Positions 50,197 to 54,470 of a stretch of 64,000 nt of DNA are shown here, in pieces. The notes beneath the pieces were generated by a model. That model searched no databases. It was not told the DNA's origin and saw nothing but the letters and a program-made list of their open reading frames with translations. The stretch is from IMG/VR virus record IMGVR_UViG_3300041411_000129, positions 186,001-250,000 of that record, one strand, 5' to 3'. Positions within the stretch are counted from its first letter, which is position 1. Each line of letters starts with the position of its first letter. Both the position numbers and the translations under genes were made by a program.

Positions 50197-50487
50197 ATGG
50201 AACGATTTCATCGTAAGAAAGAAGCTGCTGCGAAAGGATTCTTCTTCCTAGATCATGAATGTACCGGTAAGCTATACACCGGTAAGTCCACGAACATCTT
50301 GAAAGAAGTATTGGCCATCAGAGCGGCCTTGAGAGTCGGGAACTGTACTTGCAAGAAGCTCCAGAAGCTCTTCAATTCAGATCCCGAGTTTGATGTGCGG
50401 TTTATAATCACGAAGGCAATACCCGACGCTGCGCTACTCGAGAAAGAGTTCCGTAAAGGTAAGCCCAAACATCTATTGATCAACTGA
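50197..50487 (+). CDS. Degenerate GIY-YIG-like protein
   Basis: FFFLDHECTGKLYTGKS; H-less variant; distal E. Confidence 0.45.
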   Translation: MERFHRKKEAAAKGFFFLDHECTGKLYTGKSTNILKEVLAIRAALRVGNCTCKKLQKLFNSDPEFDVRFIITKAIPDAALLEKEFRKGKPKHLLIN

Positions 50488-51014: not shown

Positions 51015-54000
51015 TCACTTGATGCTACGTTCCATCCACGTCAGCAGAGCGATGATTGTGTCCTTAGCAATCACGTCTGGATGAGGTAGACCTTCCACGA
51101 AGACTTGACTAACACCCTGGTGATACCACTTATCGTAGAAATCCATGTACAGGGGATTGTCGTAATCGTAGATAGCGTCACTGAACTCAGACCCATCCGA
51201 ATGATCCAGCCAAGTGAACCAGTAGTCCTTCTCATACATCGGAAGGAGCTGCTCGATCAACTTAACTGCCTGTAGAATCTCAGCTTGTGTCAACGCCTTG
51301 ATCGTTTCAGGAGCCTTCACTGGAGTTTCGCGACTGTCAATCCAAATGTCGAATTCACGTTTCTCTACCTTAGTAGTGAATGCCGTGTGTCCGCCGATAG
51401 AATGAGTAGGTTTCAGATCAACGATAGGGGTTGGGATTTTCTTGAAGTCGGCGATAGCCTTCTCCCCCAACTCCTTAACCTTATCCGCATCATCCGCCTT
51501 GATCGCCGCGATAATCTTCGGTACTACACCTTTGTAGATCGATTGAACTGCGTCGTTCATGGCTTTCAATTGACCATGGAACTTATCACACAACCGACTG
51601 GCGTCACCTACAGCGCTACTGACCGCAGGAATGGAGTCCAAGAACTTACCGTTCAGCGAGAGTGCCTGAGCGATACCACCACTCGATACCGTGCTATTGA
51701 AAGTCTGCTCCGACAACCATTTGCTATTGCCGAAGTATTCTTTCAGGTATCTGTCAATACCTGTCGCATCGAGCATGTTGTGTTTTTCTTTAATGACGGC
51801 CTTGTTCCTGGCTTCATCCATCTTCTTCTTTGGATCGCCGACGATCAGATTTTTAATGCTCTTCATCATGTCGGAGAAACCTTCAAAGGAAGGCGGAATG
51901 ACTTTAATCTGCACAGAGTAGCCGTGCAGTGCCTGCCTGACGTCAACAGGTACGCAACGAACGATGTTCTTGCTGACTTCGCCTTGAGTCTTGTACTCAC
52001 CAGACAATCCATTGACTGGGTTGTAGTTTGCCATCCAACCATCTTTGACGTCCGGTTTGATCGTGTACAGGAATACCTGCAACGCATGAACGTCAGTAAT
52101 AGTCAGAGGTTCGTTCGACTCGATCTCGATACGACGGCCAGTGAACTTGTAACGGTTGAGTTTGAACTTCTTCTCGATAGCCGAGGAGATACCCAACATC
52201 ACCGCCGTGTCCTTGTCGTCAGCAGCGTACAGCCATTCATTAGTCTCGCACTTATCCCAACGCACGATCTCACCACTACGTTGGAAGCCAGGCAGAAGCT
52301 CGCCTTGCTTGAACGCAGAGCCGTGGTAGAGGTATTGCGGCAGATCTACTTCAGGTTCTTCCTGTACAGCGTACGGCGCAATGGTGTCGCCAACTTCACG
52401 GGAATAAGCAGCCGATTCCGAGTTCCAGCCTTCACCACCGCCACGATGCATGTCGCCTTGGAAGACGCCCAGCAGATCAGCAACGAACGACCCTAAGTCA
52501 GCCATGAAGTCGAACACTTCCAGAGACAGAGTCTCGGTGTCCACGTTCTTGATGCCGAGGATAGATGCGGTCATTTCAGCCGACCACGTCAGGATGTCGT
52601 TACTGCGGGTGGAGATGTTTGGAGCATCGCCAGTATCCAGCAAGAAGTCGAAGACGAATACTTCACTGTCTTGACCCAACCGGGCAGCACGAGCGATTGT
52701 CTGTGTGCGGATCGCATCACGGAACGGTTGGTTGAGCATCAGGATGGTGTTTGCAACGGTCAGTGGTACGGCCGTAGACAAACTCTGGAATGTAGCGACC
52801 AGAGGATTGAGGTCCTCATCCTTGTAGTACTTGGCCACGATGGTTGGTAAGTCCTTATTGGTCTCACCGTACACCTTCGCTGGAGTATACCCATCGTGGT
52901 ACAGTTTGTCGGCAGCAGCTTCCAGCACTTCAACGTAACTGGTGAAGATCAGCGTCTTCTTCTTAGCCGCATCGATGTACTTCTCGAGATCGATGTGCGC
53001 CAGCATATCCAGGTGGCATGCACTGCGGGCCTTACCAAGCACCCCGCCGAGCGCCTCACCCATGATTTTCAACTTGACATATTTAACTACACTGCGGGCG
53101 CCTTTGAACTCAGCTTTCAGAGAACCATTCAGCCTTGGCATGATGGTCTTCAGCTCGTACCGATTACAGAGCTGAGCCTCAGCCTTCATGGTCATCGGAT
53201 CAAATCCGCCAGATACAGTTGCGAAAGCAGATCGATAAGCGTTGAACTCACGACGATCAAGATCAGTACGAAGAGTCTTCTCAAATTCATTGAGACCTTC
53301 CTTGTACTTATCTTCGTAGAACTTCCGGTTCTTCTCGTAGTAGTCCTTGCGTTCATCAATGAACTTACGCATCCGAGCGCCGATGGCTTCCAACGTATAG
53401 TCGTTACCATTAGGCATCTTCACCATGACCTGTTCCACAGTCACCACTGTGTCTACCACGTCCTGTTTAGGAACGTGATACTTCAGGTGACCGATGCGGT
53501 TACGGAGAATGTCGTTTGCGCGTTTAGCGTCCTTGCCGTAGATCTTACGGAAGGCTTCTTCGCAGTTATCATCAAAGTACGGATCGACACACTTAAGGAA
53601 AGGAATACATTCCGATCCCATCGCTTGGATTGGTGTACCGGACATCCATAGGCAGTAAGCGATAGTCGGCATCTTACACATCTCGACCAATAGCTGGGTG
53701 CGGTCAGCGGCAAGACGGTTGAAGTTGTGCGACTCATCGACGATGATCATGGCGTCTTTGAATTCGCGAGGGTTGGCTTTAACGAAGTCGAAGATCGTTT
53801 GGATCGATTCGTAGTGGCAAACGTAGAAGTGCTCGTCCAGCGTCGGGAGACGACCTTCAGTACTCACCCAGTAACGACGCTTGGTCATCATGATGTCTTG
53901 GATGGTATCCTTCCAAACACGCTCTGCGGCGTTCTTAGGAGTGAAGACGATAACCTTAGGCGCATGTAGTGCCTCGCTCAACACGAGAGCTGTAACAGTC

Positions 54001-54470
54001 TTACCGGTGCCTGCGCCAGCATCGAGCAGATAACCTTTAAGCTTGTAAGCAGGGACCATCCGACCGTACAGTTGAGCGAACTCACGCTGGAAAGGCTTCA
54101 GTGGGAATGGAACCTGATTGTCCACTACAGACATGTCAGTGATCGACTTGACATCACGGTCTACGTCACCGAGCCAAGTCTTCTCACGTAGCTCCTCGAT
54201 GACCTTAGCCAGTACACGCTTCGGCGTACGGGTCTGCTTGTCATCGTACAGCGTTTGACACATGTAAAGGAAGTCGAATCCGAAGAAGTGACGCATCTTG
54301 AATTCGCTACTTCGAACATTCTGGAACATGTACTTGTAGAGAGCGTTGGTTCCCCAGAGACGATACACGTCCTTGAAGAACAGCATCGTACTGATACCTT
54401 CCACTACAATGAAATCACGGGTAGTGGTTACGTCCACTAATCCAAGACGCCGCCTTAATCCTGCTAACAT
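51015..54470 (-). CDS. SNF2/SF2 helicase with about 500-aa C-terminal extension
   Basis: DAGAGTGKT, IVDESHN, MSGTP, QTIARAARLGQ. Confidence 0.88.
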   Translation of the reverse strand: MLAGLRRRLGLVDVTTTRDFIVVEGISTMLFFKDVYRLWGTNALYKYMFQNVRSSEFKMRHFFGFDFLYMCQTLYDDKQTRTPKRVLAKVIEELREKTWLGDVDRDVKSITDMSVVDNQVPFPLKPFQREFAQLYGRMVPAYKLKGYLLDAGAGTGKTVTALVLSEALHAPKVIVFTPKNAAERVWKDTIQDIMMTKRRYWVSTEGRLPTLDEHFYVCHYESIQTIFDFVKANPREFKDAMIIVDESHNFNRLAADRTQLLVEMCKMPTIAYCLWMSGTPIQAMGSECIPFLKCVDPYFDDNCEEAFRKIYGKDAKRANDILRNRIGHLKYHVPKQDVVDTVVTVEQVMVKMPNGNDYTLEAIGARMRKFIDERKDYYEKNRKFYEDKYKEGLNEFEKTLRTDLDRREFNAYRSAFATVSGGFDPMTMKAEAQLCNRYELKTIMPRLNGSLKAEFKGARSVVKYVKLKIMGEALGGVLGKARSACHLDMLAHIDLEKYIDAAKKKTLIFTSYVEVLEAAADKLYHDGYTPAKVYGETNKDLPTIVAKYYKDEDLNPLVATFQSLSTAVPLTVANTILMLNQPFRDAIRTQTIARAARLGQDSEVFVFDFLLDTGDAPNISTRSNDILTWSAEMTASILGIKNVDTETLSLEVFDFMADLGSFVADLLGVFQGDMHRGGGEGWNSESAAYSREVGDTIAPYAVQEEPEVDLPQYLYHGSAFKQGELLPGFQRSGEIVRWDKCETNEWLYAADDKDTAVMLGISSAIEKKFKLNRYKFTGRRIEIESNEPLTITDVHALQVFLYTIKPDVKDGWMANYNPVNGLSGEYKTQGEVSKNIVRCVPVDVRQALHGYSVQIKVIPPSFEGFSDMMKSIKNLIVGDPKKKMDEARNKAVIKEKHNMLDATGIDRYLKEYFGNSKWLSEQTFNSTVSSGGIAQALSLNGKFLDSIPAVSSAVGDASRLCDKFHGQLKAMNDAVQSIYKGVVPKIIAAIKADDADKVKELGEKAIADFKKIPTPIVDLKPTHSIGGHTAFTTKVEKREFDIWIDSRETPVKAPETIKALTQAEILQAVKLIEQLLPMYEKDYWFTWLDHSDGSEFSDAIYDYDNPLYMDFYDKWYHQGVSQVFVEGLPHPDVIAKDTIIALLTWMERSIK

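Follow-up and report, generated by a model that had tools for sequence, protein, structure and literature searches.

The window analyzed here, a 64,000-nucleotide stretch covering positions 186,001 to 250,000 of IMG/VR virus record IMGVR_UViG_3300041411_000129, is part of a complete virus record of 253,921 base pairs (bp) with terminal repeats. On its minus strand, where all features of the gene described below lie, one open reading frame (ORF; 51015..54470, stop codon included) encodes a predicted precursor of 1151 amino acids (aa) and 130.8 kDa. An earlier note, made from the sequence alone, had described this product as an SNF2 helicase followed by an ADP-ribosyltransferase (ART)-like domain and a head-protein-like domain, with the tripeptides S-L-E and S-F-E at the joints; when each motif was placed by script, all of the ORF and motif coordinates in that note were exact. 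No cultured phage was matched when the gene was searched by megablast. The same frame, intact over 1151 aa, is present in contig L006, and the three-module architecture is found in 9 further 90%-identity clusters (39–88% identity, on contigs of up to 254 kb), making 10 clusters altogether. When the window ORF was compared with that of L006, the ratio of nonsynonymous to synonymous substitution rates (dN/dS) was 0.04 for the helicase, 0.08 for the ART domain, 0.20 for the C-terminal domain, and 0.20 for the linker; purifying selection acts on every module of the fused gene.

Module 1 (52518..54470, aa 1-651, 74.7 kDa) is a superfamily 2 (SF2)/SNF2-like helicase and an ortholog of phiKZ gp203 and RAY gp131, which bears out the SNF2 assignment made from the sequence. 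Pfam families ResIII (PF04851, E 2.5e-10), Helicase_C (PF00271, E 4.4e-6), and SNF2-rel_dom (PF00176, E 1.4e-5) are matched in aa 143-599, and phrog_62 is matched at 8e-89 in PHROG. By tblastn, the helicase finds 208 cultured-phage records, all of phiKZ-like jumbo phages (chimallivirus helicases, 36–45% identity), and a search with phiKZ gp203 against the window's own genome returns this ORF as its single match (33% identity over 657 aa, E 1.6e-114). The annotated counterpart of phiKZ gp203 in PhiPA3 is gp233; the proteins called "gp203" in the SPN3US and Goslar papers are unrelated tail proteins and were rejected as counterparts. According to the literature, phiKZ gp203 is a helicase that is packaged in the head, proteolytically processed, co-pelleted with packaged DNA, and dispensable, and RAY gp131 is virion-associated by mass spectrometry and localizes with capsids. 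The window protein and these two share an orthologous helicase core (33–45% identity), a gene on the strand opposite to the neighboring genes, and an S/G/A/T-hydrophobic-E motif immediately after the core. In the window protein this motif is S-L-E at aa 649-651; with the Pfam helicase domains ending within aa 143-599, it lies after helicase motif VI, as had been noted.

Module 2 (51891..52343, aa 710-860) belongs to the family of phrog_13483 and phiKZ gp282. The phrog_13483 profile, to which no function is assigned, matches the domain at 2e-40. A tblastn search found the domain in 65 phage records, nearly all of them Pseudomonas phiKZ-like phages, where the small stand-alone protein is phiKZ gp282; the window's own genome contains a single copy. 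An AlphaFold model of the domain, computed from an alignment of ten homologs, had a predicted local distance difference test score (pLDDT) of 85.9 and a predicted template modeling score (pTM) of 0.78; the alignments used for folding held metagenomic homologs only, without the proteins of GenBank phage records. A Foldseek search of this model against the PDB returned nothing below 1e-3, and the resulting list consists almost entirely of ADP-ribosyltransferases. Against a viral structure library, the matches were DarT, Arr, an ART-PolyVal-like protein, and viral Tpt1. The closest structure is KptA/Tpt1, with the match covering only the lobe that binds nicotinamide adenine dinucleotide (NAD+; chain residues 86-180), and no separate RNA-binding lobe was detected.

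Three residues of this domain are invariant in all homologs examined: H716 (52323-52325), in the LYHGS motif of the first strand (YLYHGS, 52334-52317, aa 713-718); Y748 (52227-52229), in the WLY motif of the second strand (WLYAADDKDTA, aa 746-756); and E825 (51996-51998), in an E-Y/F-K-T-Q motif of a late strand. Model residues 22-162 align with PARP1 857-1011, and the end-points of this alignment would put H716, Y748, and E825 near the catalytic His, Tyr, and Glu of PARP1. Based on the predicted structure, we regard the ART fold of the middle domain as established, and the assignment of these residues as a His-Tyr-Glu (H-Y-E) triad, which draws on strand order and the alignment end-points, as likely. 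The ART-like domain proposed in the earlier note is upheld by the near-uniform Foldseek list and by the conservation of the H-Y-E-like triad.

The window domain and the phiKZ gp282 family have ∼40% identity and the invariant LYHGS, WLY, and E-x-K/T motifs in common. They differ in their setting: gp282 of phiKZ, 201phi2-1, and relatives is small, stand-alone, leaderless, not annotated as structural, and encoded far from the helicase, whereas the window domain sits between two head-protein modules. No mention of gp282 or PHIKZ282 was found in the literature, and the assignment of an ART fold to the gp282/phrog_13483 family appears to be new. In phiKZ, an in-frame ATG precedes the annotated start of gp282 (AAL83183.2) by 18 codons (L003:2992-3046; AF399011.1 about 256554-256608). 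Because the annotated start removes the conserved LYHGS strand with the putative catalytic His, the deposited protein is probably truncated at its N terminus.

Module 3 (51018..51881, aa 864-1151, 32.4 kDa) begins with an amphipathic helix (aa 865-876, in a helix-forming stretch of aa 864-878) and is a member of the phiKZ gp303/phiKZ_IP family of internal head proteins. The module has one cultured-phage relative, and its only match in PHROG, a weak one, is to "virion structural protein." Neither a word search nor an ESM feature search with module 3 found any relatives. Since the word search was blank, an exhaustive phmmer search was run, and it recovered 54 representative proteins. A profile from 42 of these (A2) matched gp303, annotated as "structural head protein," in the phiKZ genome with an E value of 5.8e-22, with a second partial repeat at 6e-7. 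PF12699, the Pfam family of phiKZ internal head proteins, is matched by 6 of the 42 family members, and the window's own module 3, taken alone, falls below detection by PF12699. Its AF2 model has a pLDDT of 92.5; the best match in the ESM Atlas is a viral cluster with PF12699 (phiKZ_IP; template modeling score 0.52/0.54 over 204 residues), and comparison with solved structures gave no convincing match. The profile, the PF12699 members, and the ESM Atlas cluster all place the C-terminal domain, which had been called head-protein-like, in the gp303/PF12699 family. In the literature, phiKZ gp303 is named together with gp203 as a processed, packaged, and dispensable head protein. By profile, module 3 and gp303/phiKZ_IP form one domain family, and both have S-x-E and then G before the domain. 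Module 3 differs in that its copy alone does not reach PF12699 and in that it lacks its own N-terminal propeptide, the place of which is taken by the ART module.

According to the literature, the prohead proteases of giant phages cleave S/A/G-x-E or A-x-E motifs, as well as T-F-E, on the C-terminal side of the Glu. A homolog of the phiKZ gp175 prohead protease is encoded in the window's own genome (C1:85043-85597; 31% identity, E 5.5e-20) and has a gp176 homolog as its neighbor; it was found with gp175 as the query, and Pfam Peptidase_S77 (T4 gp21) detected no protease in this genome. The 1151-aa protein contains 16 [SAG]-x-E sites compared with 13.4 expected from its own composition, so that over-representation of the motif across the whole protein was rejected and the tripeptide alone is unremarkable. 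Because these sites are not enriched overall, the case for cut sites rests on positional conservation: it is in their conservation among relatives that the two joint sites go beyond chance.

Joint 1, the predicted prohead-protease site that closes the helicase, is S649-L-E651 (52518..52526). It reads L-[S/T/A/Q]-L-E in 15/15 fused metagenomic relatives, and at the same position cultured phages have S-L-E (phiKZ gp203 and DT01), S-F-E (PhiPA3), G-L-E (RAY), A-M-E (Goslar), or T-V-E (Eowyn). It is followed by a variable, propeptide-like linker (52344..52517, aa 652-709) that contains a second candidate site, S690-R-E692 (52395-52403), and is modeled with a pLDDT below 50 at residues 690-704. Among the fused relatives, this linker is hypervariable in length and sequence, yet it is flanked by two conserved [SA]-x-E motifs, the second of which stands 15–25 residues ahead of the ART domain in most of them. 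Stand-alone ART proteins have a leader of 10–14 residues that ends in L-S/A-L/M-E; such leaders resemble the short peptides that direct T4 internal proteins to the capsid and are cut off after Glu.

Joint 2, the predicted site before the head-protein domain, is S861-F-E863 (51882..51890), with G864 next. All ten fused proteins with a head-protein domain have [S/T]-x-E here. In the wider family, S/A/T/G-x-E followed by G/S/A/K is present in 39 of the 40 representatives (the P3 residue is S in 34, A in 2, T in 2, and G in 1), and the fortieth begins at the joint 2 position itself. The P3 preference at this joint is the same as that reported for the prohead protease of the phiKZ type. At the same position, phiKZ gp303 has S-N-E and then G. 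A stand-alone head-protein gene (P0014) has just a 21-residue leader before the motif, and helicase-ART proteins end 2–6 residues short of it.

Relatives carry the modules as separate neighboring genes that are split exactly at the joints. In contig L007, a 652-residue helicase ends at joint 1 and is followed by a GIY-YIG homing endonuclease gene on the other strand and by an ART gene of 209 residues with an S-L-E leader. In L019, the order is a helicase ending at joint 1, a homing endonuclease, and an ART-head-protein gene; in L018, one gene separates the helicase from an ART-head-protein gene, behind which lies a further phiKZ_IP gene. Phage pPa_SNUABM_DT01 has a helicase and a separate head-protein gene with a 26-residue leader that ends in S-L-E. 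The fused architectures observed are helicase-ART, helicase-ART-head-protein (the ten 90%-identity clusters), and ART with two head-protein domains, and ART-head-protein two-domain proteins make up at least four 50%-identity clusters (P0012, P0013, P0015, and P0016). The S-L-E and S-F-E motifs, proposed in the earlier note as protease-type joints, are both conserved family signatures and coincide with the points of gene fission in relatives.

Several individual proteins and genes extend this picture. P0012 (814 aa) consists of a leader, an ART domain, and two tandem head-protein domains, each after A/S-M-E and the same amphipathic helix; because it repeats both in tandem, the joint and the head-protein domain can duplicate as a cassette. 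P0039 (370 aa) starts with the last ∼45 residues of a DT01-like helicase, including S-L-E, directly followed by a head-protein domain, and probably represents a 5′-truncated helicase-head-protein fusion without an ART domain, a further architecture. In P0069 (1284 aa), a fourth module of ∼130 residues (1150-1284), with an LYHGT motif of its own, is joined behind the head-protein domain via S-S-E/S-H-E. It has a sub-threshold match to PF18760 (ART-PolyVal, E 0.1) and may be a second, unrelated ART module. The GIY-YIG (I-TevI-like) homing endonuclease genes of L007 (5192-5935, minus strand) and L019 (4186-4986, minus strand) lie exactly between the helicase and ART genes. The ∼10 codons that flank the insertion resemble each other (the helicase ends ...T-L-D and the ART protein starts ...S-L-E), and this similarity suggests that the gene was split by insertion of the endonuclease or, in the other direction, fused by its loss. 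In the window, a small endonuclease-like ORF (50197-50487, plus strand; phrog_13862, 1.4e-9) lies ∼500 bp downstream of the gene.

The gp203-type orthologs of cultured phages end 24–55 residues past the motif of joint 1, with a short acidic tail and an aromatic C terminus; in place of this tail, the fused protein has 500 residues with two further modules. The last residues of the acidic tails (L001, L009, L010, L011, and L012) follow a Pro/Arg...aromatic pattern (e.g. ...PRAMNF, ...PRSTEW, ...PAFLEW, and ...PAYMRF), and similar ends (...NYLRW, ...SYLAW, and ...RYLF) are found in some stand-alone ART proteins (P0003 and P0007) and in phiKZ gp282 (L003:2992-3507). This pattern, absent from the fused protein, may represent a C-terminal tag common to these proteins, perhaps a peptide that targets them to the capsid and can be removed. 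In each of the cultured phages examined (L012:28215-32768, minus strand; L008-L011), the helicase is followed by one or two genes of 145–649 aa on its own strand, among neighbors on the opposite strand. In phiKZ, these genes are gp202 and gp201, downstream of gp203, and both carry a structural annotation. The position behind the helicase gene may generally be used for packaged cargo of a variable kind.

Parts of this arrangement have counterparts in known systems. T4 Alt is described in the literature as an ART that travels in the capsid, loses its targeting peptide when the prohead protease cuts after Glu, and is co-injected with the DNA. By analogy, the window protein would likewise provide a head-packaged ART that is cut after Glu and delivered with the DNA. 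Alt belongs to the R-S-E clade and is a single module with an N-terminal targeting sequence of 10–20 residues, whereas the window ART has an H-Y-E-like triad and forms one of the three parts of a precursor. Polyvalent proteins (Iyer et al. 2017, PMC5512222) combine several unrelated activities in one virion-delivered chain, and ART and SNF2 domains both occur among them; their processing into separate units has been proposed and ascribed to a metallopeptidase domain in the same chain. That article does not mention phiKZ-like phages. The window protein resembles polyvalent proteins in joining unrelated effector domains in one phage chain. Searched against Pfam, it has no peptidase domain and no match to PF18760 (ART-PolyVal), and it differs from them in that cutting would be carried out in trans by the capsid maturation protease. 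A processed head-packaged helicase (gp203), processed internal head proteins (gp303 and phiKZ_IP), a packaged and injected ART (T4 Alt), and polyvalent proteins are already known. What appears to be new is an ART module fused between two processed head proteins, with joints that would be cut in trans by the capsid maturation protease instead of by an in-chain peptidase.

From these comparisons, we consider it probable that this gene of a phiKZ-like (chimallivirus-type) jumbo phage specifies one precursor, from which three proteins are made that are packaged in the head and delivered to the host. These products would be an SNF2-like helicase associated with DNA (aa 1-651), an ART-fold enzyme of the H-Y-E type (aa about 693-863), and, as the third, an internal head protein (aa 864-1151). 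In the proposed sequence of events, the precursor is incorporated into the prohead, where a gp175-like protease would cut after E651 and E863 and probably also after E692, yielding pieces of 74.7, 19–24, and 32.4 kDa and discarding the variable spacer. The pieces would leave the capsid together with the DNA, and the ART domain would then, like T4 Alt, use NAD+ to modify a target, either of the host or a nucleic acid, at the very start of infection. Packaging, cleavage, and injection of the window protein are inferred here from its relatives; the earlier note had proposed that the three modules undergo these steps separately, and each part of its reading that could be examined by computation held up.

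Several observations weigh against this proposal. The phage is known as a metagenomic virus record. Conservation of the joints could instead reflect a structural role, such as capping of the following helix. The triad was placed by strand order and alignment end-points rather than by residue-level superposition; when the ART domain and nine homologs were compared with Pfam at E values up to 1, no Pfam family was matched, the ART families and PF18760 included, and a profile search with the domain against PDB sequences found no ART, the only hits being chance matches to L18 and cystatin. The gp282 protein of phiKZ, for its part, is leaderless and without a structural annotation. The recurrence of the fused ART-head-protein pair, in at least four 50%-identity clusters, fits a pair that works uncut, and joint 2 could for this reason in principle stay uncut. 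This last point leads to the main rival, partial processing in which the ART and head-protein domains remain joined: the protein would be packaged but uncut or partly cut, for example after E651 only, as a "polyvalent" protein in which the head-protein domain is the packaging or targeting handle of the ART. Polyvalent proteins are indeed a known class of injected multidomain proteins. We judge this rival to be unlikely, since the S-x-E-then-G type of motif is kept before the head-protein domain in 39/40 representatives, among them stand-alone genes with a short leader, since P0012 repeats it between its two tandem head-protein domains, and since helicase-ART proteins stop just short of joint 2.

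The precursor proposal leaves room for a different activity of its middle piece. The ART fold may be kept without protein ADP-ribosyltransferase activity, in a nucleic-acid-end enzyme (KptA/Tpt1-, DarT-, or Scabin-like), an NADase, or an inert structural component of the head. A nucleic-acid target is possible, given that the closest structure is the NAD+ lobe of KptA, an RNA/DNA-end-modifying enzyme, and that the partner helicase binds DNA. Against this, the match is confined to the NAD+ lobe of KptA/Tpt1 (86-180), with no separate RNA-binding lobe detected, and the invariance of H, Y, and E in every homolog examined speaks against an inert domain. Tpt1 is not known to carry a third-position Glu, and it has its catalytic Arg-His-Arg-Arg tetrad in or beside the N-terminal RNA lobe. 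On balance, this group of alternatives is somewhat doubtful, less so than incomplete cutting. The remaining explanation, that the long ORF arose by accident, in assembly or through gene fusion, and has no functional consequence, with its motifs there by chance, could appeal to the metagenomic origin of the record and to a tripeptide motif that is common, but the frame is intact in an independent contig with low dN/dS (0.04–0.20) across the modules, 9 further clusters (39–88% identity) share the architecture, and the motifs are positionally invariant. These observations effectively refute an accident, to which we assign next to no probability.

A broader and more tentative proposal, which we hold to be possible rather than probable, is that phrog_13483 is an unrecognized H-Y-E-type ART family of nucleus-forming jumbo phages, one clade of which loads it as a trans-cut precursor module together with a DNA-bound helicase. 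The enzyme would enter with the genome and act before phage gene expression. Its target could be nucleic-acid ends, in the manner of KptA, or else a host defense or transcription protein.

In the minutes before their protective shell has formed, nucleus-forming jumbo phages have to keep their DNA safe and express it, and proteins co-injected with the DNA are hence central to this stage of infection; the functions of these proteins are mostly not known. The locus described here gives an ADP-ribosyltransferase fold to a conserved family annotated without function, which includes phiKZ gp282, and gene fusion ties this ART-fold enzyme to two head proteins, gp203 and gp303, whose processing is known. 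The Ser-x-Glu joints would amount to a simple grammar for assembling and swapping packaged cargo in phiKZ-like phages. Such a grammar could predict other packaged effectors, and it could be used to load foreign proteins into the heads of jumbo phages, as the capsid-targeting sequence of T4 allows.

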